Shown here one piece after another: positions 3,990-44,820 of a stretch of DNA of 64,000 nucleotides. Numbering within the stretch: the stretch's first letter is position 1; each line of letters starts with the position of its first letter. The position numbers were made by a program, and so were the translations under genes. The DNA is from Podarcis vaucheri (taxonomy: Eukaryota). The stretch is from NCBI GenBank assembly GCA_965113315.1, contig OZ220363.1. One strand, 5' to 3'. Below the pieces are notes generated by a model that was not told the origin of the DNA, ran no database searches, and was given only the letters and a program-made list of their open reading frames with translations.

Positions 3990-4433
3990 TGGTAAAATAA
4001 AGTGAACATATCACATCATTTATTTGGAATGGCTACATTAATGCAAAAAGCAACATTAAGACAGCTATTTGCTTAAAAAGCATTCATCAAAATAAATACA
4101 AAATATTGATACTACAAATAATTTAAACTATGTCTTTCCTCCCCACCAGGTGGTGTAGGATAGTCTTTGCATCTTATAAATATAAAACAAAATAGCAGTT
4201 TGCAAAGTGGGCCTCCTCTTCAGTTGGCCAGACTTTGTGTTTGTCAAAAGTTTCTTTGGTTTGCAAAAGCCTTTCAGCAAAGATTTGGCTCTCCTGCTCA
4301 GCAGCCTCATCAGATCCGAAGAGATCTAGCAGTTGCTGGCATCCTTCTTTGCTTTCCTTCATTGGTACCTTGCTCCGGTGCACTTGAATCACAGTCAAAG
4401 ACACTTGGTCCTGTTGTCATCCAGAATAATGTT
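3990..4433 (-). other. PHLDA2: Non-coding exon 2 (3'UTR) of PHLDA2 copy B; intron 4434-6893
   Basis: On the minus strand: donor AAG|GTGAAG at 6894/6893; branch-like GCTGAC, a pyrimidine tract and CTATAG| acceptor at 4435-4434; AATAAA at 4024-4019. Aligns to 44363-44820. The 3' end is approximate. Confidence 0.8.
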
Positions 4434-6928
4434 CTATAGATGGGGAGGGAGAGAAAGGTAAGAGGAAGTCAGCAAAATGACGAAGACCAAGTAGAAATCT
4501 CAAACTGGTTTTTAAAAAATAATAAGAGCCTTGTGGCATCTAAAAGCAGAGGTGGCCAACTTACAGGCTATGTAAGAGGTCATCTGTGGTCTCCATAACC
4601 ACACTATATATTTTTTGAAATTATATTGCTGGTTTGTTTGTTTTTTAAATGATTCTTTCTATAGGTCCTCTGTTGTAATACCATGATGACAAAAAGTCCC
4701 TACAACTCCCTCCCCTCATTTTTATAATAAACAAATGTTTTTTACTGACTATTCCCATGGATCCTGATGTGATTTTTGGCTGCAGCCATTTTGACTCATG
4801 GGCAACACTTTGGGAGTCAGTGAGGTCCTTGGCCTCAAAGTAACTAGTTATCATTGCCTGAAGAATTAACAAGTTGATTTACAGCAAAGGTTTTTATGGA
4901 CCAAAATTTGCAAATGCTTTTGCCATGATAAACCTATTAATTTTTAATTAATAATTTTTCTAAGCGTCATAAAGCTATTTTTGATGCAGCAGACTAAAAT
5001 GACTGCTCCTCTGATAAATGCTTGAATACAAAATGAAGCAGCAGCTAATGTTGCATTTCTTAAGTTTCAGTGTAGGTTGCAGACGAGTCTTTCTGCCATA
5101 TAATTAGTGGGATTAGGGTGAGAGGAGAACAATTGCTAGTGAATGTTTTAGGCAGAGTCCTCCAATTTGCAGAAACTAGAGTCAATGGAAATAGGAGCAG
5201 TACACTGGGGGGGGGGGAATCCCCTCTTTTCAAATGGCATAGCAGGCAGCATTCAAAGTTGTCCAAAGGCACATTCACAATAAATCCCCAAGTTGACATT
5301 AGAGCACTAGGCAGTGGCTCTGAAACATTTACTGCCACAGACCACATGAAACCTGTTGAGGGTGTTGGCAGACCACTTAATGATTTTTCTGCCTGTCGTA
5401 GGAATTATAGGGTGCTGTGTGCTAGATGCTGTATGATTTAAATGCATTTTTATTGCTTCTTTTATTTCTTATATTGTACTGTATTACATATACAATGTTG
5501 AATATAAGAAATAAAAGAAGCATCAAAAGTACATTTAAAAATCAGTATATTTAAAGTGATCAGTGTGCCGGCTCCTGCCTTCTGCCACACACCCTGTGGA
5601 CCACCTGAATGAAGCTCATGGACCACAGTTTGGGGACAGAGCATCTCAGCAATGCAATCCTAAACATATCTCCTAAGTCACTAACAGTTCAGTTTGTAGG
5701 AATTGTGATCAGGTCTGCAAAAAACTTGCTCTGGCATAATAAGCACTAAGAGCTTACAAGGCCATCAACCTTCATACTTTGAAGTATCCTTGCTGAAGCC
5801 CAACATGTTTTGCAGCTTCAAGAGCAACTGAATACACCTCCATTATAGTTTAATTACATTTTTACATGAAAGATTTCTGGTCAGTCAGAAGAGAAGCACA
5901 CACTACACAGTCTATGTGGGCCAGCCCTATGTGGCACCAACAGGGTGCATAGAATTCTGTGCAGGAAAGACCCTTTGCCACTTTCCAAGAATCATGGTCT
6001 AGTTTCTCTGGAGATCATGGACTTTGGCCTGAAACACACACTCAAGACTTCTTGCTTACTTTTTTCCTGTCAAAAATCGCTCTCCCTGCAAAGCCAGTCC
6101 TCCCCCACCTCTAGCCTCCTCTTTTGGTTTGCAGCATACATGGCTGCAGTTTTGCAATCATGGACCACCACATGTTCTGTAATTGTTCTGCCCTTAAAAG
6201 TCCCAGGGGTGGCTGCTTGCAGGGAGCATCACCCTCATCTCGCTCCAGCTGAGTTAGTGCAAACTTCAGCTTTGCCTGCATGTTGCACAAACACATTTTG
6301 TGCATTCCCATAGCAATGGCTCTAAAAGGAAGCTGCCTTATACAGAATCACCCATCTCAGGGTTGTCAGCAGCCCCCTCGGTTTCCAGAGGGGTTTTTCT
6401 CCCACTCCTATCTGGAGATGCCAGGGAGTGAACAAAGCAGATGCTCTACCCCGGAGTGACTGCACTTCTCCTCCTCCCAAGTGCACTGGGCACTTGGGCT
6501 GACGCTGGTCCGCCAACAAGCGGCAAGAGGGGCTTGGGAGGAAGAAGAGAAGAGGCAGTTCAGCAACGGGGCGCCCTAAGGCCTGTCCCCACTTGGCGGC
6601 TGCTGGTTCTTTGTCTCCGCAGCCCAGGAAGCTAGAAGTTTTTCCGAACACCGCACCTCCGGTGGAGTTTGCGGAGTCGACTTCGATCCAATTCCTTGTC
6701 CCTTCAAATCTCGCCCACCTCCGCCTTTGTTACTAAGTTTATTCCAACCGCAGCCTATATATGCAAAAGGCTCCTCGATCGGGACTAACCTCCAGCCCAC
6801 TTTAGTGCACAAAACGAAGAAGCCACCGGCTCACGATGGGCGAGCCCCCAGCCTCCCCTCATCCCGCCGCGCATCTCCTGCTCCCTCCTTCACCTTTGGT
6901 CTCTCGCTCGGGGGCGCGCGTGTCGGGC

Positions 6929-7357
6929 TCAGGGCGCGCGCGCGAGGCGCCTGTCCCGGGTGGCGGCGGCCGCGTGCTCGGCGGCCTCCTGGCGGCTCTT
7001 GAAGTCCTCGATGGCGCGCTTGTTCTGGAAGTCGATGAGCGCCATGGTGATGGAGGCGTTCCAGCAGCTCTCGCCCGGGCACCGAAAGTCGATCTCCTTG
7101 CGGTCCGTCGTGACGATGGTGAAGTACACGTACTTGCCCGTCCGCTCCACGCAGTCCACCTTCTGGATGGAGCCGAAGCGCAGCTCCTTCCCGCCGCCGC
7201 CCCGGGCCTTGCCGGCCTCGGGCGAGAAGAGGCTCAGGCTGTCCTTGCTCAGCACCACCGCCTTCTTCTTCCACAGCTGGAAGAGGCTGTCGCTGCGCTT
7301 CTCCAGCTCGCCCTCGCGGATCACCTCCGACGGCGACGCGGAGCCCGGGCCCTTCAT
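6929..7357 (-). CDS. PHLDA2: Pleckstrin homology-like domain family A member 2, duplicate copy (copy B), 142 aa, CDS entirely in exon 1
   Basis: [32 protein letters not shown]...[49 protein letters not shown] has the PHLDA2 PH-domain signature ([18 protein letters not shown]; [22 protein letters not shown]). ATG at 7357-7355 in context AGCATGA, TGA at 6931-6929. Lies in a CpG island. Confidence 0.95.
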
Positions 7358-7529
7358 GCTGCTGCTGCCGCTGCTGCTGCTCCCCGCGCTCGCCAACAGA
7401 GCCGCCGCACCGAGATCGCCTCGAGGGACCAGCGCCAAGGCCACGCTCGCCCACCTGCCTGTCTTGCCTGCCTGTCTCCCGCCGGCTCCGCGACGCTGCT
7501 GGGATTCGCTGTGCGCTTTGCGAGAGAAG

Positions 7530-7620
7530 AGAACCATTTATGGCCTTGGAGAGACGTCCCAGACCCCGCCCTGCGAGCCCCGCCCCGCCTGCCGGCTCCG
7601 TCGCCCCGCCCACGCCAGAC
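7530..7620 (-). promoter_or_regulatory. Core promoter of PHLDA2 copy B (CATAAA TATA-like box, several GC boxes)
   Basis: Minus-strand CATAAA at 7542-7537, preceded by GGGCGGGG motifs. The same order and similar flanks occur at 41488-41530. Confidence 0.65.
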
Positions 7621-7843
7621 TGCCCCCCCCCCCGCGTTCTCTCTCTCAATTCCCCACGGTCTAACCCATCGTCGTTCAACTCTGCACTGACAATCTTCTT
7701 TTAGCCATCATCACCACTGCAGGTGTTGCCCTGCAATGGTCATTGCAAAAGTGGTGTGCAGGACCTGACAATGACTTTCCCATCCCCACCCCCTTCCCAG
7801 CTAGGAGTGCTGGCTTTCACTAGATTCTCGATTATTATTGCAC

Positions 7844-8176
7844 CCTCTGTGGGTTAAACCACAGAGCCTAGGGCTTGCCGATCAAAAGGTCAGTGGTTCA
7901 AATCCCCGCGTCGGGGTGAGCTCCCATTGCTCGGTCCCTGCTCCTGCCAACCTAGCAGTTCGAAAGCACGTCAAAGTGCAAGTAGATAAATAGGTACCGC
8001 TCCGGTGGGAAGGTAAACGGCGTTTCCATGCGCTGCTCTGGTTCGCCAGAAGCGGTTTAGTCATGCTGGCCACATGCTGTACGCCAGCTCCCTTGGCCAA
8101 TAAAGTGAGATGAGCGCCGCAACCCCAGAGTCGGTCACGACTGGACCTAATGGTCAGGGGTCCCTTTATCTTTTTT
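7844..8176 (+). mobile_element. Sauria SINE (Squam1-type), about 200 bp upstream of the copy B promoter
   Basis: tRNA-like head (GGTTCAAATCC B-box), body CCTGCCAACCTAGCAGTTCGAAAGCA...GTAGATAAATAGGTACC, 3' end GGTCAGGGGTCCCTTTA. Confidence 0.85.
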
Positions 8177-9838
8177 ATGGCTGGTAGCCGAACATGTGAC
8201 CTGATAACACTGAAAAACGTTGCATATACAGTATTTGTGATGGGCCATTCAGAGGCACAAACCCTTACTTCAGCCCCATTCAGGTGCATGCAGAGCTGGG
8301 TGGAAAGTGAATTGCCTTGGCAGACTTTGTTAGGTCCAGTAGATCCTGGTGGTATCACTGAAGGTGCATAAGCCTATAAGCCTGTGGACTGAGAGTCCTG
8401 CTTTTGGGAGAGGGGTTGGGGGGATTGACCCTGTCTCAGCCATCATGAATTCATGGAGTGCTGGATCTTGTCTGCAAAGGACTTTGATGTTGTAGTCAAC
8501 ACATGTGGAACATGCATGTCTGAGCCAGCCCCAAAGGGATGCTTCACAGTTGACATCTTAAGGAGTAAACCTTAAACGTTTTGTGAGTTATATGCAAAAA
8601 AGCGAGAACCACAAAGCTGCGTTTGCAAACGTGTATTATACACTTACTAAGTGCACTCAACAAAGCACTGGAATGAAGTGTGGCTCCATAAAATGAAAAA
8701 GAAAAGAAAAGAGGAAAATGAGACTGGCCTGTGGCAGACAAAAATAGAAAAGCAAAACAGAGAAATCCAACTGAAAATGTAGAAAAAGGAATATGTGATT
8801 GAAATAGCCCACAAATAATGGGAAAGATTATTGGCACTATGTTGCTGCAGATTGATACCGTGCACAATAAAACATAACATAAACACATCAACTGATACAC
8901 AGAATAATTATGAATTCACAAGGTGATTTTACAGGCACAAGTGCTGGACTTGTGGGTATACATGTAAACAGAGCTCTTCCCACTTCCCACTAATTCCAAA
9001 TGAGCTCAAGAGCTGCATAGCTGAATGTTTAAAAACTGCAACTGCATGCCCAAGTGTTTTGATAGGGATTAAGTGTCCCAGTCTCCTGAAGCCTTATTGT
9101 ACACAGACAAAAAGTTGTCGATTCCATGCCTTGGAAATGACGATAGGGACAAAGAAAATGACGCAGAGTACTACAGCAAGGGAGAAGATTAACAGCCAGT
9201 TCTTTAGTCTGCTGTTTCTTCAGCTTGTGTGGATGTTTTTTTTGGGATTGATTGTTCTCTGTGTTAAGAGAGTGAGCCACGAACCTGCAAGTCCCTGGTT
9301 TGACTTAGGTGAAAGCCACCTGCACCTCTCTCTGCCTCACAGCTTCAGTCCCTGCCACATCTGCAACATGGCAGATAATGGCCAGTTCCACTGGCAGAAG
9401 CCCACACAAGGGCTTCTGCTAGCGTAATGGGGCTTCCCCCCTCTTCCCCCGCCCCCCTCAAATTGGCTCTCAGTGGGTTGGGAGAAGCGCAGAGCAGTGC
9501 ACAGGAGAGCAGGGGGCATCGTTCCATCTGGCAAGCCAAAATGCTTGCACTGAAGAAAGGATTGCCATCATGCTATGCTGAATTTCACCCTCCAGTTTCT
9601 GACTCACAGTAGCAGTGGATAACCCATCTCCTGCCAGAAGTTGGACTCTAAACTCCCATAAGCCACAGCCAGTGGCGCTCCAATGTGGAATGCCCTGCCT
9701 AGCTACAGTATGTTCACCCACTTCCCCAACAGCAAAGTTTTTCTATGTTTTGGGGAGGAGTTTCCAGATGCCAGCCCTTTACGCTACAAGCTGATCCTTG
9801 TTGAGACTGAGCAGCTGAGTATTCGTCATTGGCACCCC

Positions 9839-9839
<1 letters not shown>

Positions 9840-9885
<46 letters not shown>

Positions 9886-10250
9886 AAAACATTTTTATTA
9901 AGTTTCCATTTTATATAAATATAACACACTCAAATTTTTCACCTTATATTCCACTCTCGCTAGCACTTGACTCCCCTCTCTCCCAGCCCATGATTGCCTT
10001 AAATTATATCTTTTAAAATTGCATTTCATATTTCCCTTCTTTACTTTCTATTCAATTCTGATAATCACAAAATTATATTAATTATAAATCAGTGCTTTCT
10101 ATAAACTATCAAGCTATAAATCAGTCCTGTCAGTGTTGTTAAATGTTTACAATTATATTTCAAATACTCTGTAAACTTATTCCAGTCTTTATGAAACGTT
10201 TGATCCATCTGCTTTCTTTTAGATGTCTGGCAAATACGTTTTTATTCAAC
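9840..10250 (-). mobile_element. L1-type LINE 3' end with (GAAA)n tail
   Basis: (TTTC)n at 9840-9883 next to a minus-strand AATAAA; AT-rich 3'UTR similar in style to 32580-32970. Confidence 0.5.
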
Positions 10251-10944
10251 TGGGCCCTTCAAACACCTTGGTCATTTTAAATTCTGATTTTTTATTTGCT
10301 GCTTTTCTGCAATCCTATCCATCAGCAGTGGGTTGGTTGGTTTCATTTTCTTTGTTCCCCTCAGAAATAAAGGCTCTGTGCAGCACACATGTAAAGCATA
10401 TTACCCCCCCCCCAATGAAACCTGTGGACTATAGTTTGTTAAGGGTTCTGGGAACTGTAGCTCTATAAGTGGTAAAATACAATTTCCAGGATTATTTGAA
10501 GGGTGTGTGTGCACTTTGAATGTATGGTGTGGATGCAGACAATCTCGCAAGTACACCAAATGGCTCTCTACGCCTTCAGCTCACCTTCCTTTATAATGCG
10601 ACAGTCTCTCTCCCTTCTGCTCCCCTCCTTCATTTTTCCTGCCAACATACTGCATTGCCCACCTCTTCCCCCTCATAGCCTTGACTTCAAGGCTGACCCA
10701 AGGCAATTTGTAGCCTGAGGCAAAAAACAAGATGACACCTTCCACTTTCCCTTTCCATATTCAGAAACTGCCTAGAATGGCATTTGACGCTTCTTACTTC
10801 AATACTGGCGAACAGCCACAAGGCTGCCCCACCCCACCCCCAGCATTCACGTCTAAGGCAGCCACCTCACTCTGCCTAACGGCAGGCCAGGCCTTGCTCT
10901 CCTTGCCTCCCTTCTCTTCAGACATTTTCTTCCCGCTCCTTCTT

Positions 10945-11070
10945 TGGCTCACTTGTACCTCGCAGCATGACTCGCCTCAGGAATGCAGCTGTTGCCTCGC
11001 CCACTATCTATGAGTCAGCGGCAGCCTTGGAATTCTCTCTGCAGGTTTCATTCAGCTGTTGGGCTGGGCC
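10945..11070. promoter_or_regulatory. Putative enhancer upstream of PHLDA2 copy B (paralog of 39913-40040)
   Basis: AGGAATG (TEAD-type) joined to CAGCTG (E-box), TGAGTCA (AP-1) at 11011-11017, and a second CAGCTG. Closely alignable to 39913-40040. Confidence 0.55.
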
Positions 11071-11333
11071 CCGGATAGTGGGAGAAGAAGAGGTAGGCCT
11101 TTCGAATGCAAATGCCACGGGAAAGCCGTTCTTTTGCTGCAGGAAACGTGGAAGACGACTTCACTTTTAGGTTCGCTAAGCTTAGCCGATCAACTCAGTC
11201 ATGCTTTTCTTGTGAGGATGCTTTCAGAGGAGGACATGGTCACCTCAATGTTTGCCCATTTGGGCTGGCTCCCTCACTGGTGTGTTCCCTTCCAAAAAAC
11301 CCAATTTCTTCATGGTCTAGGTTCATAGAGGTA

Positions 11334-11559
11334 CAGTGGTACCTCGGGTTAAGAATTTAATTCATTCTGGAGGTCTGTTCTTAACCTGAAACTGTTCTTA
11401 ACCTGAAGCACCACTTTAGCTAATGGGGCCTCCTGCTGCCACTATGCTGCCAGAGCACAATTTCTGTTCTCACCCTGAAGCAAAGTTCTTCACCCGAGGT
11501 ACTATTTCTGGGTTAGCGGAGTCTGTAACCTGAAGCGTATGTAACCTGAGGTACCACTG
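11334..11559. mobile_element. Tc1/mariner MITE
   Basis: CAGTGGTACCTC...GAGGTACCACTG with TA TSD. Confidence 0.85.
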
Positions 11560-11784
11560 TACATACATGTGCAAGCCAGTCACTTGTTTCCACAAGCCTC
11601 GCCAATCTCAGGAGGAGATTGGTGTGGTAGCATGTAAGCATTCAGAAATACGTTTTGGGTGCCTATCTCAATGCACAAATGGGTGGTGCCAATGCTTTGA
11701 TATGGAGAATGTATTTCATACATTCATTAATTAATTTGAAACATACACATCCTTCTATTCTTCAGAATGGTGCCAAATGTAGGC

Positions 11785-11985
11785 GAGGAGCTTGGTGTAG
11801 TTGTTGTACTGGGAGACCGGGGTTCAAATCCCCTCTTAGCCATGAATTTCACTGGGTGACCTTGAGCCAGGCACCGTCTCTCAGTCAAACGTACCTCACA
11901 GAGTTGTTGTGAGGATAACATGGAACAGAGAGAAAACCATGTATGCCACCTTGAGCGCCTGAGAGATGGGCGCTAAATGCCACAA
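11785..11985 (+). mobile_element. Old tRNA-derived SINE
   Basis: TGGTGTAGTTG A-box, GGTTCAAATCC B-box, and GGGTGACCTTG...ACCTCACAG..TTGTTGTGAGGATAA core. Confidence 0.7.
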
Positions 11986-12703
11986 CATCAGTAATAATAT
12001 GTTAGTGCTTTGGAACAATTTTTGTATTTGGACTATGTCTGTCCGAAGTTGTGTTCCCACCCTGTCCTGCTTTTGAGAGCTAGGAAGGTGACCAACAGCA
12101 GCCTTGGCCTCAAAGCAGTTAAAAGCTCAGCTACTTTCGGTACTGGAATTACAAGAGCACAGCAGTATCACTTGCAGCCACTACTTTAGCTGACAGGGCT
12201 GTGATGGCAGGAGGCTGAGGATTCATAAAATGGGAGAAGGGAAGGGTTCCCTTCCTTTGAAAGGAGAACCTGACTGCTCCAGGCATAGGAAAGGAGCAAG
12301 AAAGGCAGCGGGGGAAATGCCAAGAGTGAGAGCATTCAGAAATGAGACGAAACAAATTGAGGGCTGCAGGAATGCACGTCTACACATGCCCTGCCGTAGC
12401 TTGGAGGGTTAAATTATTAGATGTGCTTTTTCTAGGTGAGACACACACTTGCTATTTCATTTGTGCATTCAAGAGTTTGGTTTCCAAAACCCTCACCTCA
12501 TTGGTACTTTTTTATAGCTCCTGTCACGCATATGGCCATGTTTCTGGGGCTTTGAAAATAGCATAAACAAAATATCGTTTCAGTACTTTGGTTTTGGATT
12601 TTTATTGTAATGCTGACAGTATGTGTTTGTTCTGAACACTCATCCACCCAGATAGATCTATACACACTGATTAAGATTAATTTATCTACCGACTGCTTAA
12701 TAT

Positions 12704-13239
12704 TGTTATGAGTCTTTTTGTGGGGAAAGTAGGCTGTATGCTGAGACCCTTCTAATTCCTGGATCCAGCATGGATTCAATTGCTGGAATAGCCAGGCGAG
12801 CCTGGTAATGGCCTGCTAAGTGCAGGTTGTTAAGAGAAGAAAGGGAGTGGCTCTGTTCCAGAGGGCAAGTGGGTAGGTTTCCCTCCCTGAACTGTCTGTT
12901 AGTTAGAAAGACAAAAGACCAGAGTGGAGAGTAGAGTTGTGCGAGCCAGAAGCTGAAAGAAAAGCTACAGGCTGGAAAGGCAGAGAGAGAGGTATGCTTG
13001 ATTTCTGTTTGAATTAAAGGCTGCGGCTATGGGAGAAACAAGACCCTCTTTTAAGTGTTATTGCTGCAAACCCCTCCATCACAGGCTCAGGTTGTATATG
13101 TGTGTAAATAAACCATATCTCATAAAGACACCACCGTCTCTGCTGTGCCTCATTCCAAAAGGAGTCACAAATCCTGGGTAAGTGCCTGGAACCCCTGGGA
13201 TCTCACACTGCTCAGAGATTGGGGTCTAAGCAGTTTACA
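12704..13239 (+). mobile_element. Old solo LTR-like element
   Basis: Starts TGTTATGAG; contains AATAAACCATAT.TCATAAAGAC. Alignable to the reverse complements of 37303-37857 and 40505-41045. Confidence 0.65.
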
Positions 13240-13749
13240 AATTAAGAACCGTAAATTCACAAAGCTAAAACACCAGCCAGGGTAATGAACGGTGTAAATG
13301 TTTCTGACATTCTACAGAGGGTGTTACTACCTATTGCTATCAAAGGTGTTACCTACACAACCGTGTGTATAATTTTGGGGTACCAACATGCCAACAGTAA
13401 TCCAACACTGCAATACTATGCTTCTCAACTCAGATGTCAATCCTGTTGTGTTCAAGGAGGCTTATTTCCCAGGTAAGTGTGCATAGAATCGCCAGCCTAA
13501 ATTCCTAAGTCTTTGTTGGACAGCTTGCCAGCGAAATTCAATTCAGCGAAATATGAAAAGCTACATAAAAATTAATGTAACAGCTAGGATGGATGGAAGT
13601 GAAAAGGGACTTTGATTGAAGCAACATGTCATGCCTACTTTGTAGCAATGAAGTAATATTGGAAAGTGTGCTTGCAACAGTAGATACTGGGAAATAATTT
13701 CCATGACATCATTTTGATTCTTACTCTTACTTTCAATGACTTGCATCTA

Positions 13750-14280
13750 CTATAATGCACCCTGTGGGGGGCTGCCTTTGGAGAGTTTTCGGAAACTCCA
13801 GCTGGTTCAGAATGCTGCAGCCAGAATTGCTATCGGGGCCAGTTATAGAAAGGATGTGATCCTCATGTTTCAACAACCCCAACAACCAGTCTGTTTCTGA
13901 GCACCATTCATAGTGTGGGATATGCCATAGAAGACTCGGGTCCCAGATTATCTAAAAGACTGCATTCTCCATATAAGTCTCCCTGGGTTTAAAGATCCTT
14001 TCCGTCTGTCCCACCAATGACTATAGCTTGGTTTTTAATGTTTTTGTCCTTGTGTTTTACTACATTTTATTGTATTTCTTTTATTGTATTGTATTTTTAC
14101 TACATTTTATTGTATTTGTGGGAGGCAGTGGAAGACAGAGCAATGGCGTGCTCTGGTCCGTGGGTTCACGAAGAGTCGGACACGACTAAATGACTAAACA
14201 ACAACAACAACAACATTGTATTTCTGCTGTTGTTGTGAGCCACCTTGAACATCATTTGACAGAAAGGCAGGATGCAACGT
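13750..14280 (+). mobile_element. Degenerate L2 3' fragment, interrupted by a BovB tail
   Basis: CGGAAACTCCAGCTGGTTCAGAATGCTGCAGCCAG (RKLQLVQNAAAR), typical of the L2 ORF2 C-terminus. Confidence 0.7.
14118..14214 (+). mobile_element. Severely 5'-truncated RTE-BovB insertion
   Basis: Matches the 3' end of 26409-27378 (AAGAGTCGGACACGACT..(CAA)n); TSD ATTGTATTT on both sides. Confidence 0.85.
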
Positions 14281-19659: not shown

Positions 19660-19850
19660 AAGGACCATAGTTCAGTGGTAGAGAACTATGCAGAAGGCAT
19701 GCAGAAGGTCACAGTTTTAATCCTCAGCATCTCCAGGTAGGGCTGGGAGACATTCCTGCCTGCAACCCTGGAAAGCTGCTACCAGTCAATGTAGACGATA
19801 CTGAACTAGACGGACCATTTGACTGACTTCGGTATCAGGAAACTTGCCAT
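19660..19850 (+). mobile_element. Old tRNA-derived SINE
   Basis: CCATAGTTCAGTGGTAGAG head and CCCTGGAAAGCTGCTACCAGTC body. Related copies near 430, 31125, 43870, 55070 and 61530. Confidence 0.65.
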
Positions 19851-27994: not shown

Positions 27995-28183
27995 GGCTGT
28001 GCACACACCATACCTTTAAAGCAGATTTGAAACACATTCTGCCCCCGCAAATCCTGGGCTCTGTAGTTTACCCCTCGCAGAACAACAATTGCCAGAAACC
28101 CTTAACAAACTACCGTGCCCAAAATTATCTGAGGGGAAGAGTATTTTTTGAATGTGCTTCAAAGGTGTAGGGCATACACAGCC
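27995..28183. mobile_element. Palindromic MITE, PIF/Harbinger-like
   Basis: GGCTGTG...CACAGCC termini with TAA TSD. Related copies near 10375-10540, 38289-38487 and 53540-53680. Confidence 0.7.
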
Positions 28184-28236
28184 TAAGTAAACATACACAG
28201 GAGTGGATGGAATGACTGCTCATATGAACCTAAGTA

Positions 28237-28467
28237 CAGTGGTACCTCAGGTTGAGTACTTAAATCATTCCGGAGGTCTGTTCTTAACCTGAAACTGTTC
28301 TTAACCTGAAGCACCACTTTAGCTAATGGGGCCTCCTGTTGCCGCCACGCAATTTATGTTCTCATCCTGAAGCAAAGTTCTTAACCCGAGGTACTATTTC
28401 TGGGTTAGCGGAGTCTGTAACCTGAAGCGTATGTAACCTGAAGCGTATGTAACCCGAGGTACTACTG
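28237..28467. mobile_element. Tc1/mariner MITE
   Basis: CAGTGGTACCTC...GAGGTACTACTG with TA TSD. Confidence 0.85.
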
Positions 28468-32116: not shown

Positions 32117-32970
32117 TGGTACATGACACCAGTCAAGTTTGCAAAAATCTATCATTTGCCCGATAATAAATGTTGGAAATGTAAGGAAACTGAAGGTACA
32201 TTCTTTCACCTTTGGTGGACGTGCCCCAGGATTAAGGCTTTCTGGGAAATGATATATAATGAATTGAAAAAGGTATTTAAATATACCTTCCTGAAGAAAC
32301 CAGAGGCCTTTCTCCTGGGCATTGTTGGCCAATTGGTGCCGAAGAAGGACAGAACTTTTTTCATGTATGCAGCAACAGCAGCAAGAATACTCATCGCAAA
32401 GTATTGGAAGACACAAGATTTACCCACTCTGGAAGAATGGCAAATGAAGGTGATGGACTACATGGAACTGGCAGAAATGACTGGCAGAATCCGTGACCAG
32501 GGAGAAGAGTCGGTGGAAGAGGATTGGAAGAAATTTAAAGACTACTTGCAGAAATACTGTAAAATTAATGAATGTTAAAATGATGTTGGAATGGAAAATA
32601 AGTGGTATTGGCAAAAAGATTATTAAGAATATGCAAATATGGATTGACAATGGTTGAAAATACATAGTTATAATAGGCTAAAATACTGAGTAAAGATAAA
32701 TGATAGAGGGTAAGGATTTGCTGAAAGGAATTTTAAACGGGAATACAAAAGGGGAGGTGTGAGGAAGCCAGGAAACAAGTAAATGAACTATAAGACATGA
32801 AATACTGATTTTTCTTTTTTCTTAACTCTTTTTTTTTACTTTTTGTGTGATTTGTCTTTGGTATTTTTGTATCCTTTTTTTCTTTTTTCTACTCTATTTT
32901 TTATGTTTAAATTTTGTAACCTTTTTATTGTTTCTAAAATTCTAATAAATATTATCTTAAAACAACAACA
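32117..32970 (+). mobile_element. Young 5'-truncated L1-clade LINE (ORF2 CCHC C-terminus, 3'UTR, tail)
   Basis: CWKCKETEGTFFHLWWTC zinc knuckle, ARILIAKYWK; AATAAA plus (CAA)n tail; 18-bp TSD ACAATATACTRTATCTAT (32099-32116, 32971-32988). Confidence 0.9.
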
Positions 32971-34681: not shown

Positions 34682-35225
34682 TGTCGTGACAGGACTCCCA
34701 CCTGCCACCAGGTGAAACAAGAAGGAAGCCCCCCCCCCCCCCGAACAAAAGAGAACCCAAAATTTTATTAGCTGCTAATCCCCATATTACACCCCCCCCA
34801 AACTACATCACTAATACATCATGGTTACATCATGAAAGGGTGGCAGTAATCTGAGCATCCTGGACCCTGCCCAATGGTTCCCCTTGCCCTCCACCAAACA
34901 CCCATAAGTGTAACAAAAGAGACATTTACATTTTCCTGTTTCCCAGCCACATTAACCACACCATTTTCTCTTCATCTGGGTTTGTTATTTCTGGAATGGC
35001 TACCTGTCTGGCACTCAGGTATCAGGATGCCAGGAATAATCACTCAGGCAGAGGGGCTGCTGAGTAGCTGAGCTCACATATCTATATGAATTTCTGAAAG
35101 TTTCCCAGTGAGCCAGTACATAGACACATTTATCAGTGAATTCTAACATTTGGTATTGTGCAGCAGAGGCCCTTTGAAAAGATAGGAAGAAACTGTGATG
35201 AAGTGTTTTGTGGGGACAAGTCACA
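34682..35225 (-). mobile_element. Possible solo LTR
   Basis: TG...CA termini and a minus-strand AATAAA near the left end; no clean TSD. Confidence 0.4.
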
Positions 35226-37302
35226 AAAGTCACATAAGTGATTGTGCTTATTTTGGTGGTGGGCTGCATGTGCATGATATCTGCTGGAGGGGCACTCCCC
35301 CCCACACCTATACATAAATTCCTGCAACAGCTCTCTGTATGAACATGGGTCACAGACACACATGCCGTCCTGTTTGCTTTTCTGTATTATACCGGCTTGT
35401 TTTTTCCAAAAGCCACAGTCCCAGTTTCTGCTCCCTCCCCCTCCCCTGTCTTCTCCATGATCTGTGTTGCCAGCTATAAAACAATCTCTTTCTCATGTCT
35501 GTGTGCACATCTCTCTCGATGCCACATTCCTGGCCTGGTGAACTGGGCAATAAATACCTCTCTTTCCGCAGTAATGAAAAACCTGCCATTCAGGATTTGC
35601 ACTTGCACTTTGGACCTTTATTCCTTTGGCTCAGCAGATAATTCTGAATGGTCGGTCCTTTTAGCGTTTCTTTGCTACTGCCATTAAAACGTTTAGATTA
35701 AATCTACACTTTGAGAGCGAAAGCGAAACAATCCTCAAGTGCCAATTCGCTTTGCACGGTCTATGAACACCTACAGGGAGCCATCAAAATGTCACAAAAC
35801 AGTGGGCAAGATTAAGGCTGGATTCTTTCTCCAAGAAGGCAGGACTGACCCCTGACACTGGATGTAAAGGAAGGAGCTTTGACCAGGGCAGTCATAGGGG
35901 GAAACTATTATGAAACTATGAAAGGGACACCTTTCATCTGCTCATCCTACCAACCAGGGAAGAAGCCTGCGTAACTCGGACTCTCTCATACTGCACTTTT
36001 GAATCCTGCTTGGCCTTAGCAAAAGGGCAAGGTGGTTAATGATAGGATATGTTGGTTTCTACTGTCCTAACGAAAACTTAAGTAAATTCATTGACGGGGC
36101 TGTGGCAAGACAAGGCGATCCCATGAGCTGACCCCCTCCCACAGAACTTGCAAAGCACCTGCCGCACCCAAGAACTCCCTGCTGCTGTGAAAACAGTGCT
36201 TTTGTACATGCCTTCGACTCTTTCACTGCTGCAGTGCAGAAGCCACATTGGCTCTGTCGAATACAATTGGCCTAGTTACCACTTTCCAGCTGTCTAGCCA
36301 GCAGGCAATCGTAGGGTAAGGTCAACGAGAAGGCCACCCTTTAAGAACCAGCCTTTACCTTCCATCCAGGGGTGGGTTGGGCAGCAGGCAGATTATCCTG
36401 CAGTCAACACACCCCTCTGTGATGGGCAGGGGTAGGGTTCCTCCTTTAAGCTCCTTACTTGTTCTGCACTTCACTCATCTATTTGACTCCAAAGGACCAA
36501 AATTTATTAAAAGGTGGGTTGACGGCCATTGTGTGTTCTCACCAGAATCGCTTATGGAAACCATATTTTTTAAAAAACCCAGAAACCTAAATAACATCTG
36601 GCTCTGTAATTGCCAGCTACACTTGCACCAGAGCAGCCAAGTGCAAGCATGATTTGGAAAAAAAATATTGCTGCTTTAAATGTAAAAATGAATTTTTTAT
36701 AATAGAAACCTGTATTTTCAATGCATTTAAGAAGCAGGAAAAGGCAAGATTCCTTCAGCTAAAAGCCTTTCACCCTGTCCTGCATGACATTTGCTCATGC
36801 AGGACCTCCCTGCCCCCGCCCCCAAACACACCCCAAAAATGAATACAGCTCCAAGATTCATTTGTTTCAATGTGTTCAAAAATGCTGCCTGGATTCTAAT
36901 CTTCTTAATTCCCTTTCCTGTTTTTGAAAAACTTACTTTTATCAGAATTGATGGGCTCCTTTGTCAACTGGGCATGGATTGAGAAACCAGCCAACTGTTA
37001 AAATGTAGGCAAATCCGGCTGTCAAAGCTCATGCAGGTGTACAGGATGGAAGCAACTTCTGCTTCTCTGCATGATAGAATGCCCTTGTGTGAGATATGCT
37101 TTCAACACAGGAGATTCGACATACTCATATACCAACTCATATACCAGCAGAAAGGTTGTTCATAATGGAGCTTTGGAGCTTTTGATTATGGAGCTGGTTT
37201 CAGGTTAAGTAGCCCAAACTTTAGAAACTAGACAATTTCTGGCACACCAATTATTGCATTTCCCATTCTCAAGACTCCTCCATTTCTCAATAAGCATGAT
37301 GT

Positions 37303-37857
37303 TGTTGTACACCATCCCAATCTCCAAGTGATACAAAACTCGAGGGATTCCAGGTAGCGCTTATCCAGGGTTCATGTTTCCTTTGGAATGAGATATAGTG
37401 GAAATGGTTGCGTCTTTATGATATATGGTTTAATAACACATATATACCACCTGAGCCTATGATAGAGGGGTTCACAGTGTTAACATTCCAAGAGAGTTTT
37501 GCTTCACCCCTAGCCACAGCCTTGGATGTGAGCAGAAATCAGGCATCTCTCCTTCACAGGCTTCAGCCTGCTTCTTCCTCCAGCTTCTAGCTCTCTCACA
37601 CACAACTCAACTCTGGTCTTTGTCTTTTCTAACTACCTACCAATCAGTTGTGAGAGGGTGGGCACCCATTTGTTATCTGGCACATAGCCACTTCCTTTGT
37701 TACCTTAATGACCCATATTTAGAAGACCATTATCACACCAGAAAGCTAGCCTGGCTATTTCAGGAATTTGAACCATTGCTTAGATTTTAACACTTGCTGT
37801 ACCCAAGCATTAGAAGAGTCTTGGCATACAGCCTTCCCCACCACCAAACTCATAACA
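37303..37857 (-). mobile_element. Old solo LTR-like element (same family as 12704-13239)
   Basis: TG...CA termini, 4-bp flanks ATGT/ATAT, similarity to the two other copies. Confidence 0.65.
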
Positions 37858-37877
37858 ATATCCTCAATGCGATGAAT

Positions 37878-38515
37878 AGGGATGGAGAAGACATTTGATT
37901 TTGTTTGCATTTAAATGAGAACCTACCTAATTTGCACTTCTCAATCCAATATGTGAACTGAAACACAGGTATTCTTCAAAATCCACACTTGTCTGAATTT
38001 TGAAGTACAGTTCTCCAACCAAAGAGTACGTGCAAAATGCATATTGGGGTAAATGTGCATAAAACGTGTGTATTAGTGAAAATAACATACAGAATGCAAG
38101 ATATTAGGAGAACTAGCTTGCAATAATTTGTCTATTAGTCAAAACTGCCTACAAATATATGCTTATTACTATAGTTTTGCACTAAAAAGCTGACAAACCT
38201 TGATGAGGATTTATGTTTAATTTTAAAACGCTGATTGCTGCAGAAATGTGGAGAACTGAATTTAAGACTCGAAAAATGAGAAACTTAAGCTGTGTACACA
38301 CCATACCTTTAAAGCACATCTCAAACATGTTCATCCCCACCGCAAGGATCCTGGGAACTGTAGTTTGTTAAGGGTGCTGGGAATTGTAGCTATGTGAGGG
38401 GTAAACTACAGTTTCAGGGTACTTTTTGTGAGTTTTTTGTGTGCATGTGCATGCACATGCTTTAAGTGTATAATGTGTACACAGCCCTAGAGAACCAAAA
38501 TGACAGATTTGTCCA
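37878..38515. mobile_element. Old DNA-transposon-like repeat with a nested palindromic MITE (38289-38487)
   Basis: Reverse-complement similar to 59-410; the insert has GCTGTGTACAC...GTGTACACAGC termini. Confidence 0.55.
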
Positions 38516-39912
38516 GTGAGATACTATCAGTTCATCACCCCAGAAATGCTGCTGCCTCTTGCTTCACAGCTGTGGATCCCCAAACAATTCCCCAAACCCC
38601 TTATGCAGTCTGCTTTGTTCAGGACCACCCAACAACAAAAAACACGAGCAAGTGTAGGTAGAGGTGTAGGCTGACTGGAGGAACAGCACTGGCATCATCT
38701 GAATGACCAGTATGTGCTAGTATGAATTGGGTGCGGCCTTGGAAAGCAGCACAATACCGAAAGTCAAGAATCCCATAGCAAACGTCTGGTTCCCAGGAAA
38801 GAAAACCCATTATTTCAAACAGGACATCTGGAGCAGGGCGTGTGCAAACATGTGCCTGCCTGCACACCTGACCTTTGCTCAGCCTTGATCTGGGTTTCAT
38901 TCATGCCTTCTTTCTGTTGCCTTTCCAAGTGCACAAAGTCAATTCAAAGCCTGTCCAAGGGCTCTGACTGCAACGCAGCCCGTTTGTACTGAAGGTAGCT
39001 GGATAAAAATATAAAAAGGGTAGGGAGGGAAGTGGAAACGTTGATTTAAAAAATAGTGAGACATTGAGGGACTCTCCTGCGGGTGTGGGCACCATTTAGC
39101 AAAAGTTGGTTGCAATTAAATCCTATGGACAACAATGGAAAGGGAATGCACTTAGCTGTGTGGCTAATTTTTGTAAGATTGTGTACCTTCCTTCCCCGTT
39201 CCTCATTTAGGGAGCCAAGGCTCATGGGTGGCTGCTGATGACTAAAAGCTGTGCAAGAGGGGCACTGTGTTCTGCTCTCAGGTCAGAAGGCGATGGACAC
39301 AAGAGTGGGGAACTGGGCCTGGCCAGCAAGCCAGATGCTTATCTTGACCACCACCTCCAGGTCAGGTATGACACGTGGGTGGAGCCACCCACTTTGTTAG
39401 TCACCTGACATCACTATGACACCAGCTGACTCAACTTTACCCACATGTGGGCAATGGCATGGTGCTTTGCGCTAAGAGTCCGTTAAACCAGTAGGAGAAC
39501 TGGGTGGCTGCCTAGGGTGGCAAACTTCCAGGGTAGCCAACCTGATGCCAAGTTTCTGTGTTCAGGTTTTTATTAAAGTTTTTTCATGACACAATATAAA
39601 GATAGAAAACTAATGTAAATTAGAAAATGAAAACAAAAACTGCTACAAAAAGTAAAAATAAGGTATGATGTCCTCTCTTAAAGGTAGTTCTTAACTTTCA
39701 TAGAAGGTAGTAGCCCCTCCCAGCTCTTATCTGGGATCTTTCCTTTCTCCTTCCAGCCTCTCACCCTGGGAACCTGACAGAAGTTTCTGGACTACAACTC
39801 ACATCATCCCTGACCATTGGTTGTGCTGGCAGGGGCTCTTGGGAGTTGTAGTCCACCATTTTCTGGAGGGCACCATGTTGGTTACCTCTGCTCTCGCCCT
39901 CACCCTCGCTCC

Positions 39913-40040
39913 CTGGCATGCCTGCACTTCACAGGATGACTGGCCCCAGGAATGCAGCTGTTGCCTAGCCCACTATCTACGTCTGAGTCAGCTGCAGCCT
40001 TGGAACGCCTCCCAGATTTCATTCAGCTGCTGGGCTGTCT
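39913..40040. promoter_or_regulatory. Putative enhancer upstream of PHLDA2 copy A (paralog of 10945-11070)
   Basis: AGGAATGCAGCTG at 39948-39960 and TGAGTCA at 39984-39990, in the same motif order as the 10945-11070 element. Confidence 0.55.
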
Positions 40041-40504
40041 GGCTCATGGAGGAGGGCTAGGCCTCTTTATCTTAAGTGTCGTTCCTTCAGTTTCCTTTGC
40101 TTCAGGAAACCTCAAGCCTGCGATAGGCCGCCTCATATGTTCACACGCATAGAGCACAAATTATTTAATTCTTTTCCACTCTCTATGAGGAATGTTAATT
40201 CCTCAAAAGTAGGGTTCACATATGTCCTCTTTTTCCAGGACAGGTCCTTTTTATGGGTAGAGTTGTCATAGCGATCCATAGTTAAAAGCAGAAATCGGCA
40301 AATGTGTCCTCTCTTTTGCTCTTCAAAATATGATAACTCTACAAAAGTGGCTCTTGCATTTTACAACTGAGCCCTACCATTAGGCTAGAAAGCATAGCTG
40401 GCTGCTGATGGGGGAAAAAGGGGGTCAGAGCTGTCCCAGCCCTTAGAAAGTGTAAGGTTCCTACCTGGTCTGCTCCCTCTGCCAGTGGCAGAGAAGCAAA
40501 AGCC

Positions 40505-41045
40505 GCAATCGGCACCAATTTTGGGCAAGATACTCCAGGGATTCCATGCGCTTACCTAAGGTTCTGCTTCCTTGGAAAGAGGGACAGCAGAGACTGTGGA
40601 GTCTTTATGATATATGGGTTACTTATACATATATCATATAACCTGATGCTACAACGGACGGGCTCATAGCATTAATGTCACACAGAAGGTCCTGCATCTC
40701 CCATAGTCATAGCCTTGGATTCAAGCAGAAATCAAGCATGGTTCTCATTCACTAGCTTCTGCCTGCTTCCAGCCCAGCTCACACCGCTCTGCATTTTTGT
40801 CTTCTTCACTACCAGTCAGGTGAGGGTGGGTGGGAGCCCACCAACCATTTCCCCTCTGGCACAGAACAACCTCCTTTGTTATACTATGGACCCATACTTT
40901 GGTGGTGATAAGGACCATAGTTCAGCAATGGAGTCCTCCATTAGATTTTAACCCTTGCTGAATCCAGGACCCCAGCGATTACAAGAGACTCAGGCATCCT
41001 GCAGGCTAACACAAGCTTTCCCCCCAAAAGTCCTTAAACTCAGCA
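40505..41045 (-). mobile_element. Old solo LTR-like element just upstream of the copy A CpG island
   Basis: GTCTTTATGATATATGG...AGCCTTGGAT..AGCAGAAATCA shared with 37303-37857. Ends are approximate. Confidence 0.6.
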
Positions 41046-41379
41046 GCCTAATTTAGTGTGTGTGTGTGTTTGTGTGTAGATCTCCTTGCTGATCTACTGC
41101 AAGCCACGCAAGAGACCTCTCAGCAGATCCTGACCCACTGCCAACGGATGGAACAGGAAACCCCCTCGAGAACTTTAATGGGGGGGGGGGGATAAGAACA
41201 CAAGGCAAGTCCAACACGTCAGCAGATAGGAAACGAGCTGCTCTCTAAGGCTACGGGAAAGCGACCTGGAGGAGGGAAAGGCAGGGAGGATCTGCTTTGA
41301 CAGCCGCCGGTGTCAGGCGCCTCCCGGCCCCGAGGGTGGGCTGAGGATCAATCCGCTTCCGCCGGGAGGCCGCGGGAAG

Positions 41380-41530
41380 GGGGGGCGGCGGCGGCGGAGG
41401 GTTGGGCGAAGGGCTGAGCGAGCGAGTGGGCGGCAGGAAGAAGCGCCCAAGTCATCCCGGGTCTCCTCGCGAGGGCGGAGGTGCGCCGGCAGGGCGGGGC
41501 CTGGGGCGGCCCCAAAGCCATAAAGGGCTC
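41380..41530 (+). promoter_or_regulatory. Core promoter of PHLDA2 copy A (GC boxes, CATAAA box at 41519-41524)
   Basis: GCAGGGCGGGGCCTGGG...CCAAAGCCATAAAGG matches copy B GCAGGGCGGGGTCTGGG...CCAAGGCCATAAATGG. Confidence 0.65.
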
Positions 41531-41745
41531 AGCCGGCTCTTCGCCCGCAAGAACGCGCAGCAGCCCGAGCAGGAGCAGCAGCAGCGGCGTCGCGGAGCCG
41601 GCTGGAGAGGCCAGCGTCCCCGTCGGAAGACAGGCAGGCAAGCAAGACAGGCAGGTGGGCGAGCGTGGCCTTGGCGCTGGTCCCTCGAGGCGATCTCGGT
41701 GCGGCGGCTCTGTTGGCGAGCGCGGGGAGCAGCGGCAGCAGCAGC

Positions 41746-42177
41746 ATGAAGGGCCCGGGCGCCGCGTCGCCGTCGGAGGTGATCCGCGAGGGCGAGCTGG
41801 AGAAGCGCAGCGACAGCCTCTTCCAGCTGTGGAAGAAGAAGGCGGTGGTGCTGAGCAAGGACAGCCTGAGCCTCTTCTCGCCCGAGGCCGGCAAGGCCCG
41901 GGGCGGCGGCGGCGGGAAGGAGCTGCGCTTCGGCTCCATCCAGAAGGTGGACTGCGTGGAGCGGACGGGCAAGTACGTGTACTTCACCATCGTCACGACG
42001 GACCGCAAGGAGATCGACTTTCGGTGCCCGGGCGAGAGCTGCTGGAACGCCTCCATCACCATGGCGCTCATCGACTTCCAGAACAAGCGCGCCATCGAGG
42101 ACTTCAAGAGCCGCCAGGAGGCCGCCGAGCACGCGGCCGCCGCCACCCGGGACAGGCGCCTCGCGCGCGCCCCCTGA
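41746..42177 (+). CDS. PHLDA2: Pleckstrin homology-like domain family A member 2, syntenic copy (copy A), 143 aa, CDS entirely in exon 1
   Basis: Same PH-domain signature as copy B. ATG at 41746, TGA at 42175-42177. Tail-to-tail with SLC22A18, as in mammals. Confidence 0.96.
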
Positions 42178-42577
42178 GCCCGACACGCGCGCCCCCGAGC
42201 GAGAGAGTGACCTGAGGTGAGCGAGTGCTGCCGTCTTGGTCTCGTTTGCCCCCTGACTTCGCCCCCTCCCCGCCTCCCCATCTTCACTCATTGATCCTCT
42301 GAGTCGATTAATCTGAATCAAAACCCCAAGACCTGTTCTGCTTCATAGGGCCTGCTGGATCACAACCACTCCGTCTATAACCAGCGCAACTTTGGGAAAC
42401 TTGTATGCAATTCAGTGGCCTTCCCCTTCTTACCCCATACAGGATTTATCGTGGGTTGAGAAAGCTTATTTGGTGGAATCTGTTGCGCATAACCTCCCTG
42501 TGGGCAGCAGAGCTTGGTTCTAGATGATGATTTTGCAGATCATTGACTAACCGTAGATTAGCGTCAGTAACACACTA

Positions 42578-42813
42578 CAGTGGTACCTTGGTTTAAGAAC
42601 GGTTTAGATTATGAAAAACTTGGATTAAGAACGCTGCAAACCCAGAAGTAGGTGTTTTGGTTTGTGAACTTTTCCTTGGAAGCAGACCATGTTTCGCTTC
42701 CTGTTGAGTGTGTTCCATTTGTAAATTGAGTCCCCCACTGCTATGGGAAAGCACGCTTTGGTTTAAGAATAGACTTCCAGAATGGATTAAGTTCGTAAAC
42801 CAAGGTACCACTG
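42578..42813. mobile_element. Tc1/mariner MITE in the PHLDA2 copy A intron
   Basis: CAGTGGTACCTTGGTTTA / TAAACCAAGGTACCACTG TIRs. Confidence 0.85.
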
Positions 42814-44362
42814 AAGTTAACAGGAGCATTTGTCTTAAACCGCCTAAATTCCATCAGCTTAAACTGCGGATGAACTAATCATTTTAAATGAGAATACTTG
42901 GATGTGCCTTGGTTTCCTCCCAGATTTAGAATTGGCATAATGTGTGCATCTGCCAAGGAAGCAGAACTCTGAAACTGCAGTGGGGCCAGGCTGTCTGCAA
43001 AAAATAAAAAATTAAGCTGCATTTTGACTTTTCGTGTAATTCAGCTGGTCCCATTTAAGGAATTGTAAGAGGCTAGGTGGCTCTGGAAGCCTCCCTGGGC
43101 TATGCCCTCCTCAAATAATGGCTCTTTCTGGCTTTGTTAAAGGTAATCCAGAATAAATGGCTAAAGTGAGGGTGACACCTGCGTGCATCTGGGGCTCTTC
43201 TTAACGAACTCCCAGGCAATGGCTTTTTCTGTGTGACCAATGTGCTGCTTCAGCACACACCCATATTCCAGGCAGGAATTGCCATTTATTTTTAAGTGGC
43301 GACTTTCATCTGCCTCCAAGTAAAAGGAGAAAAAAGTTAGGATCAGGATGTTGGGAGAGAGGAGCTGTTCAAACTTTTAGGAGTTCCTGGGATGAGAAAC
43401 ACTGTACCCCTCTAGGAGTTGTTAGACTCCAACTCCTATCAAATGCAGCCTGCATGGCTAGTGATCAAGGATGAGGGGATTTTTAGTCCAACATAACTTG
43501 GAGGATACCATGTTCCTTGTCCCTGGTTTCGATAGTTTGGTTATTACAAGTCATCTGGATGAGAATGGATATTGGCAGGAAGGTTGGGATGTTGTGAGTT
43601 TTGCACTAAGAACTCATTGCAGAGAGTCTCTGCAGTAGAGTTTGGGGGTGTCTATTTGTGATATTACTCAAATTATTATTTGACCCAAATAACTAAACAG
43701 GAGGCAATAATTTGCATAGGAGTAGCTATGTTAGTCTGTTGCAGGAAAACCAAGCAGAGAGTCTTGTGGCAGCTTAGAGACTAACATGTTTATTATAGCA
43801 AAGCTAATATGCCATAATAACTTTTGCCAGCCTGGTGTTGAACTACAACTCCTTTTGGCCCCAGCTAGTACAGCTTTCCATGCAAAAGATCCCAGATTCA
43901 GTTCCCAGCATTTCCCATTGGAATGGGGGAAAAAACTCTCTGCCTGAATCCTGGAGAGCTGTTGCCACGCAGATTTAGTGGTCTGACTCTTGTCTAAGGC
44001 AGCTTCTTATTTTCTCTGTATATTTGGTAGTAGGATGAATTGACCTCAGTGGGTTCCTGAGGCTGTAATCCTAACTCCATTTCCTTGGGAATAAGCCCCA
44101 TGGAATTCAGTAGGATTGCCTTCTGAGGAGACCGTGTTTAGGACTGTGCTGTAAGTAAACGTTCAGAACTACTAAAGTCTAGCCTATGGTGGCTAAGCCT
44201 CAGAAAAGGATGACACTATTAGATGCTTCTTTATAGGATCTTTCTGTATCCCCGAGGTTTTAAAAAGGCAGTCTTGCTATTAGTTTAGCATCATTATTAT
44301 TTTTGCTACTAGCTTGCTTGTCCCGCTGCATCACTAATAATTTGCTTTTCTCTTGTTTTCAG

Positions 44363-44820
44363 CAGACTGTACCTCTGGATGGCAAAGAAAATCAGTTGTT
44401 TTAGACTGAACCGGGACACTAGGACACCAATGAAGGAAAGCAAAGGAGAATGCTAGGAGTGCCCAGCTTCTTCCCAGGTCTGATGAGGCGGCTGAGCAAA
44501 GAGGCCAGGCTCTTCTACGAGAGGCATTTGCAGACCAAAGACTTTTTAATTTTTTTAAAAAAAGACTCATAGGGCAAAGCATGGCTGTGTGAGCAGGATG
44601 CCTAGCTTTGCAAAAAATGCTATTGTTTTTCTATTTATGAAATGCAAAGAATATTCAGCACCTGCTGATGCAAAACCAGTTTAAATTATTTGTAATATCT
44701 ATATTTGTATTTATTTTGATAAAATATCCTTAAGCACATGTTTGTCTTAAAATTGCTTCTGGCATTTGAATATGTCCATTCCAAATTAAATGCTTTTTTA
44801 TTACTGTATATCTGAGGTGA
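44363..44820 (+). other. PHLDA2: Non-coding exon 2 (3'UTR) of PHLDA2 copy A; intron 42217-44362
   Basis: Donor GAG|GTGAGC at 42216/42217. Branch-like CACTAAT, pyrimidine tract and tandem acceptor TTTCAG|CAG| (44362 or 44365). ATTAAA at 44785-44790. Homologous to 3990-4433 (minus). The 3' end is approximate. Confidence 0.8.

Follow-up and report, generated by a model that had tools for sequence, protein, structure and literature searches.

How two genes can remain almost indistinguishable over their coding exon when the DNA on either side of that exon has diverged, in part to saturation, is the question raised by a 64-kb stretch of the lizard Podarcis vaucheri genome (64,000 nucleotides of contig OZ220363.1, assembly GCA_965113315.1, containing zero N; referred to hereafter as the window), which carries two intact copies of PHLDA2. 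A preliminary description of this DNA had taken the copy on the minus strand for a lineage-specific paralog, and by implication a recent one. We consider another account probable: that the copies form an old inverted pair, likely to be squamate-wide, in which exon 1 has been homogenised by recurrent gene conversion, and of which both members are probably active.

Two PHLDA2 genes and their identity profile

A self-comparison of the window places the two arms in an inverted, head-to-head arrangement (6900–7485 matches 41620–42206). Each arm contains an intact PHLDA2 open reading frame that translates without stops, at 6929–7357 on the minus strand (142 amino acids) and at 41746–42177 on the plus strand (143 amino acids), and the two products differ only by the substitution S6A and by one additional Gly within a poly-Gly run. 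Both proteins match the Pfam PH domain (PF00169; 25.6 and 25.1 bits, with a cut-off of 25.1) over residues 12–97 of 142/143, and so display the PHLDA family layout, in which one PH domain makes up approximately the entire protein of about 130–150 amino acids. A protein word search returned 201 matches; among the 120 listed, every source name that identifies a family is PHLDA2/PHLA2, at times garbled (the remaining entries being named "hypothetical protein" or carrying no name), and the matches listed range from lizards (98%, with Lacerta agilis at the top) down to coelacanth (62%). The nearest relatives are PHLDA2 orthologues, not PHLDA1 or PHLDA3. No entry identical to either P. vaucheri protein was found in the protein collection searched.

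Gene structure was taken directly from the sequence letters (promoter boxes, splice sites and polyadenylation signals), enabling us to trace a complete two-exon unit, including untranslated regions (UTRs), in each arm:

7486–7800, minus strand: promoter and CpG island of the minus copy, outside the putative converted tract (CpG observed/expected 0.78, GC content 0.61)
6894–7510, minus strand: exon 1 of the minus copy (5′UTR, coding sequence 6929–7357, 35 nt of 3′UTR), with the donor GT following G6894
6895–7485, minus strand: putative gene-conversion tract of the minus copy, 98.8% identical to 41620–42216
4434–6893, minus strand: intron of the minus copy (2460 nt, GT-AG)
4000–4433, minus strand: non-coding exon 2 of the minus copy, with the acceptor AG preceding 4433 and AATAAA at 4024–4019
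41380–41619, plus strand: promoter and CpG island of the plus copy, outside the putative converted tract (CpG observed/expected 0.87, GC content 0.73)
41550–42216, plus strand: exon 1 of the plus copy (5′UTR, coding sequence 41746–42177, 39 nt of 3′UTR), with the donor GT following G42216
41620–42216, plus strand: putative gene-conversion tract of the plus copy, from alignment with the minus arm
42217–44362, plus strand: intron of the plus copy (2146 nt, GT-AG)
44363–44815, plus strand: non-coding exon 2 of the plus copy, with the acceptor AG preceding 44363 and ATTAAA at 44785–44790

The minus promoter presents a CATAAA box (7542–7537) and three GGGCGG boxes (at 7611, 7585 and 7571), and the position of the CATAAA box would put transcription start at ~7510; the plus promoter presents a CATAAA box (41519–41524) and five GGGCGG boxes, with a predicted start at ~41550. 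Splice donors lie 35 nt (minus) and 39 nt (plus) 3′ of the stop codons, and a pyrimidine tract precedes the acceptor in both copies. CpG observed/expected reaches 0.93–0.94 across both 1.1-kb islands, compared with 0.23 in the spacer separating the genes. Because the intron is retained in both, neither copy is a retrocopy; a processed origin was rejected for either gene given the GT-AG intron, the second exon and the CpG-island promoter that each possesses, and given that there is no poly-A tail. In these respects the preliminary description was accurate: it had reported two intact coding sequences, each with its own CpG island, CATAAA/GC-box promoter, intron, second exon and polyadenylation signal, and had concluded that the extra copy arose at the DNA level.

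The relationship between the two arms is highly uneven. Over ~590 bp (6895–7485 against 41620–42216) they are 98.8% identical, with a core of 302 nt (6900–7201, equivalent to 41905–42206) at 100%; this tract starts inside the 5′UTR and ends 6–10 nt short of the splice donors, such that it is essentially exon 1, and identity drops within a few bases of its ends. Inside the tract, the coding sequences are 99.5% identical (two substitutions, one of them synonymous, plus a 3-nt indel in the poly-Gly run) and the 5′UTR and 3′UTR portions are identical. The coding sequence (GC3, the GC content of third codon positions, is 0.99) holds roughly a hundred synonymous sites, at which tens of differences would be expected at the divergence of exon 2, versus the one observed in 429 nt. 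Outside the tract, promoter identity (215 nt) falls to 63% (43% for shuffled sequence), the introns are 44% identical (42% for shuffled sequence), and similarity over the upstream 1 kb does not exceed that of shuffles. Exon 2 takes an intermediate position, with an identity of 68.5–69.5% (Jukes–Cantor (JC) distance 0.39) compared with 42–47% in the adjoining intron end and downstream DNA; its conservation sets in at the acceptor and ends ~25 nt past the polyadenylation signal, with long common blocks between these points.

Retention of ~69% identity in exon 2, while the adjoining intron and downstream DNA have diverged, argues that the duplication is old and that exon 2 is under constraint in both copies. 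If a rate of about 1e-9 per site per year is assumed, the exon 2 distance (JC 0.39) yields a rough age of the order of 200 million years, which would be a minimum if exon 2 is constrained, and which we take only as consistent with a squamate-wide origin. Since divergence elsewhere has taken identity down to 69% in exon 2 and to saturation in the intron and upstream DNA, the near-identity of exon 1 is best attributed to gene conversion and not to youth, and a reading of coding-sequence identity as a sign of recent origin does not survive comparison with these flanks. That near-identity extends to synonymous and untranslated sites and ends at sharp borders against flanks that are 44–69% identical, a pattern that we read as the signature of gene conversion. 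Purifying selection alone was rejected as its source, because identity takes in synonymous and UTR sites and because both copies carry the species-specific changes.

The latter property is evident in a maximum-likelihood protein tree (49 rows), in which we observe directly that paralogs pair by species and that two paralog clades are never formed; copies within a species are hence closer to one another than to their orthologues in other species, both in the tree and among the pairs listed. The private substitutions of each listed species are present in both of its copies, even in the highly derived Anolis and Tiliqua, and nearly all differences between the copies of one species are length changes in poly-Gly or poly-Glu runs.

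The poly-Gly run, (GGC)n, lies inside the PH domain (7190–7201 and 41899–41913) and is the chief site of difference both between paralogs and between species: its length is 3 to 6 Gly in lacertids, and it is longer or interrupted in snakes and Pogona. Replication slippage probably alters this run faster than conversion erases the changes.

Probable activity of the two copies

Several features suggest that both copies are probably active and functional. Nonsense-mediated decay follows a 50–55-nt rule, and since both exon junctions fall <50 nt after the stop codon, neither mRNA should be a target. A further pointer comes from P. lilfordi, for which there are three gene models with consecutive accessions (CAI5763274 to CAI5763276). 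The last of these (CAI5763276, P0047) is frameshifted and spans the 3′UTR end of exon 1 into exon 2; when the 3′UTR end of exon 1 and exon 2 were compared with it separately, its tail matched minus exon 2 at 82/86 residues (E 1e-61) and plus exon 2 at 30%, with the join at 6894/4433, the same junction as in the minus copy. PASA/EVM was used to produce the P. lilfordi annotation, with Illumina RNA-seq and PacBio Iso-Seq data on five tissues as input (PMC10214862); the tail of CAI5763276, which lacks protein homology, most probably derives from a transcript that was actually spliced.

Minus exon 2 can also be followed in public sequencing runs. At least half of the sampled, copy-specific words from this exon are held by 19 listed runs from 6 studies, whose RNA nature is a guess. 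Fourteen of the 19 (four studies) are small, at 77–119 M letters, and contain 81–96% of the minus exon 2 words; if these were whole-genome data, their volume would be insufficient to assemble a single-copy locus, and such recovery is hard to reconcile with a whole-genome source.

The alternative in which one copy is transcriptionally silent, or nearly so, and owes its intact reading frame only to overwriting by the active copy, strikes us as unlikely, even if it draws on the same process that we propose: conversion overwrites exon 1, so an intact reading frame alone is no proof of selection. What conversion of exon 1 would not explain is the state of the DNA outside the tract, where both copies keep CpG-island character (0.78 in the minus copy, 0.87 in the plus copy) and where CATAAA and GC boxes, splice sites, polyadenylation signals and 3′UTR blocks are conserved in both. 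Silence of the minus copy is further at odds with the use of its exon 1–exon 2 junction by the transcript-informed P. lilfordi model and with the presence of its exon 2 in small runs, and silence of the plus copy with the ancestral-type position that it occupies beside an MFS gene. The preliminary description had called the minus copy probably functional; conservation of promoter, splice sites and polyadenylation signal, together with the P. lilfordi junction, favours that view, the support being indirect and not read-based.

Age and origin of the pair

Sequence flanking the homogenised exon retains a record of paralog identity that exon 1 itself has lost. In P. lilfordi, the N-terminal extension of CAI5763274 (P0128) matches 41407–41505 of the plus promoter far better than it matches the minus promoter, in the same way that the tail of CAI5763276 belongs with minus exon 2. 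In snakes, one paralog has a common 5′ extension (MAPIRL..RKAARAAAA) in Ahaetulla, Crotalus tigris, C. adamanteus and Vipera, from which the other Crotalus paralog departs about 17 codons upstream of the ATG. We thus observe paralog-specific flanks that are common to species, orthologous between them both within lacertids and within colubroid snakes; because of this, the duplication predates the species splits within each of these two groups, with exon 1 homogenised in each species separately. A tblastn comparison of snake, cordylid and skink N-terminal extensions with the window promoters gave low-complexity matches only (the best being RLFARK to the plus copy, E 0.04).

Spurious N-terminal extensions derived from GC-rich 5′UTR recur in squamate PHLDA2 models (P0128, P0139, P0143, P0146, P0150, P0162 and P0168); the extended models, like the frameshifted one (P0047), are annotation errors, informative on the flanking DNA.

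The pair is not confined to lacertids. According to public annotation and cluster look-ups, at least 25 lepidosaur species, drawn from every major squamate clade, encode two distinct PHLDA2 products on a single chromosome or contig: lacertids (Lacerta agilis, Podarcis muralis, P. raffonei, P. lilfordi, Zootoca vivipara), skinks (Lerista, Tiliqua) and a cordylid (Hemicordylus), anguimorphs (Varanus, Elgaria), iguanians (Anolis carolinensis, XP_003214865/6; A. sagrei; Pogona), at least five snakes (Thamnophis, Ahaetulla, Notechis, Crotalus, Vipera) and at least two geckos (Heteronotia, Sphaerodactylus). For Rhineura, Eublepharis and Pseudonaja there are separate sets of accessions, identical in sequence. 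The accessions of the pair are consecutive in five species, a weak hint of adjacency; the inverted arrangement and its spacing are those seen in the P. vaucheri window, the other squamates being known from annotation. The PHLDA2 pair is therefore already present in the public annotation of many species, far outside Lacertidae, and the minus copy can no longer be called lineage-specific; no paper describing a squamate PHLDA2 duplication was found in the literature searched.

The tuatara (Sphenodon punctatus) has two UniProt entries (P0040, P0159) with six differences in 134 residues. These may represent a less homogenised pair, which would date the duplication to the lepidosaur stem, or they may be haplotigs.

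A history of several independent PHLDA2 duplications in squamate lineages, among which the lacertid event was old and none was squamate-wide, would also produce the species-wise pairing seen in the tree, as recurrent duplication is expected to do, and would be compatible with the low-complexity outcome of the lacertid–snake flank comparison. We nonetheless regard such a history as decidedly improbable: it requires well over a dozen events with the same outcome, namely exactly two copies on one chromosome in every major clade sampled, and it has to accommodate window flanks that are at saturation and paralog-specific flanks that are common within lacertids and within snakes. A recent, lacertid-specific duplication, in which near-identity of the coding sequences (99.5%) simply equates to youth, is very improbable given the collapse of identity at the tract ends, introns and upstream DNA at shuffle level, an exon 2 distance of JC 0.39 and a pair found far outside Lacertidae. 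An assembly artefact (false duplication or a mis-joined haplotig), to which 302 nt of exact identity between the arms might point, is scarcely credible and was rejected, as a haplotig should be near-identical throughout and in the same orientation while here only 590 bp match, inverted, with each arm in unique sequence, as the same two-gene state recurs in >20 independent assemblies, and as the 19 runs from 6 studies each hold at least half of the sampled words of the copy-specific minus exon 2.

The account that we favour can be set out as follows. The whole two-exon unit (promoter, exon 1, intron and the 3′UTR exon 2) would have been duplicated long ago in an inverted, head-to-head arrangement, certainly before the lacertid radiation, most parsimoniously in stem Squamata, possibly in stem Lepidosauria. 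Introns and distal flanks would subsequently have diverged to saturation, and the 3′UTR exon down to about 69% identity. Over the same period, intrachromosomal conversion between the two inverted arms would have homogenised the GC-rich exon 1 (most of the 5′UTR, the coding sequence and the first ~30 nt of the 3′UTR; ~590 bp) time and again, with the consequence that both genes of a species specify the same protein and carry that species' own substitutions. Each gene probably gives rise to transcripts that start at its own CpG-island promoter and end in a different 3′UTR, and the outcome would be PHLDA2 at twice the dose or, alternatively, expression under separate regulation for each gene.

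Here the single ancient origin, conversion as the mechanism and the activity of both copies are what we infer, and a number of points weigh against them. Single origin relies on parsimony and on flank divergence in this window; the flanks of snakes and lacertids, when compared by tblastn, share low-complexity matches only; the two tuatara entries could represent haplotigs; a silent copy, like an active one, could be kept intact by conversion; and the runs that hold minus exon 2 are only guessed to be RNA. A more far-reaching proposal, that of a squamate-wide pair of ~200 million years whose exon 1 is locked by conversion while promoters and 3′UTRs evolve separately, the genes being differently regulated by tissue, stage or parental origin, is one that we hold to be doubtful.

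Neighbourhood and comparison with known systems

Two further features complete the map of the locus:

47201–47422, minus strand: putative last coding exon of an MFS transporter gene, a stop-free segment (Pfam MFS_1, E 6e-5, below the gathering score)
7801–41379, unstranded: upstream spacer common to both promoters, rich in transposable elements (~34 kb, CpG observed/expected 0.23)

The MFS segment lies 2.4 kb beyond the plus copy and is convergent with it, and its nearest ESM Atlas clusters are also MFS. In human and mouse, PHLDA2 is convergent with SLC22A18, and the window exon is consistent with being SLC22A18. The tail-to-tail placement of the plus copy and SLC22A18 in the preliminary description therefore holds as regards a convergent MFS exon, its assignment to SLC22A18 being tentative at an MFS_1 score below gathering. 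NAP1L4 was not found in the 64-kb window.

Within the spacer, no Rfam family was detected, and no Pfam family was detected in the 15 open reading frames of at least 110 amino acids; this lends some, if weak, support to its earlier description as gene-free. It holds a pair of ~115-bp elements (10954–11066 and 39923–40037; 84% identical, in direct orientation, the only two copies in the window) with the first lying 3.6 kb upstream of the minus gene and the second 1.7 kb upstream of the plus gene. Because recombination between inverted arms leaves relative orientation unchanged, this pair needs either a local inversion or an independent origin. Further repeat pairs occur toward the spacer edges (12700–13196/37343–37861, inverted, 71%; 12994–13198/40535–40739, inverted, 74%; 37338–37720/40532–40899, direct, 68%), and these would be either an old repeat family or transposable element, or relics of a duplicated upstream region. 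A repeat of ~215 bp resembling a short interspersed nuclear element is present in four copies that are 81–90% identical (3125–3341, 11331–11561, 28234–28441 and 45232–45439); one copy lies just downstream of each PHLDA2 gene, making the downstream flanks look more homologous than they are. Downstream of the minus copy, open segments at 2198–2885 on the minus strand give a weak reverse-transcriptase match (RVT_1, E 0.018), and we read them as a fragment of a long interspersed nuclear element.

Mammalian PHLDA2 (IPL/TSSC3) is a member of the KCNQ1/CDKN1C imprinted domain. The Podarcis genes resemble it in encoding a small, PH-domain-only protein from a small two-exon gene with a CpG-island promoter, and the plus copy resembles it further in being convergent with an MFS transporter gene; they depart from it in that two head-to-head copies are present here, not one. 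Live birth and placentas evolved many times in squamates, live birth alone having arisen independently 100-plus times. In reptiles, no imprinting has been found (PMC10321285). In mammals, PHLDA2 is dosage-sensitive and maternally expressed, and restrains placental growth (PMC11428813). If the two squamate genes are indeed differently regulated, they would allow squamates to tune the dose of a gene that in mammals restrains placental growth, with relevance to live birth; whether PHLDA2 dose or regulation differs between egg-laying and live-bearing lineages, for example within Zootoca vivipara, is one question that the pair poses. At a practical level, because exon 1 is identical in both genes, orthology pipelines and expression studies that treat reptile PHLDA2 as single-copy will mis-assign reads.

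An extra copy of a small gene with a single-exon coding sequence invites comparison with processed retrocopies, from which the pair is set apart by a promoter, an intron in the same place and a second exon in both copies, and by having no poly-A tail. The closer parallel is with concerted evolution by gene conversion, as in the inverted hsp70 pair at 87A of Drosophila, the gamma- and alpha-globin pairs of primates and the arm genes of sex-chromosome palindromes. In common with those systems, the PHLDA2 pair displays within-species paralogs that are closer than orthologs, identity at synonymous and UTR sites, sharp tract borders and a GC-rich converted segment. It is unlike them in that the tract is very short (~590 bp, one exon) with arms 34 kb apart, and in that homogenisation would have continued through the whole squamate radiation, if the origin was single. 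A pair whose protein is held identical as its promoters and 3′UTRs diverge thus provides a natural system in which to study how long conversion can persist between short inverted repeats; we regard it as a fresh example of a known process, with some bearing on the evolution of placentation, and not as a new kind of system.

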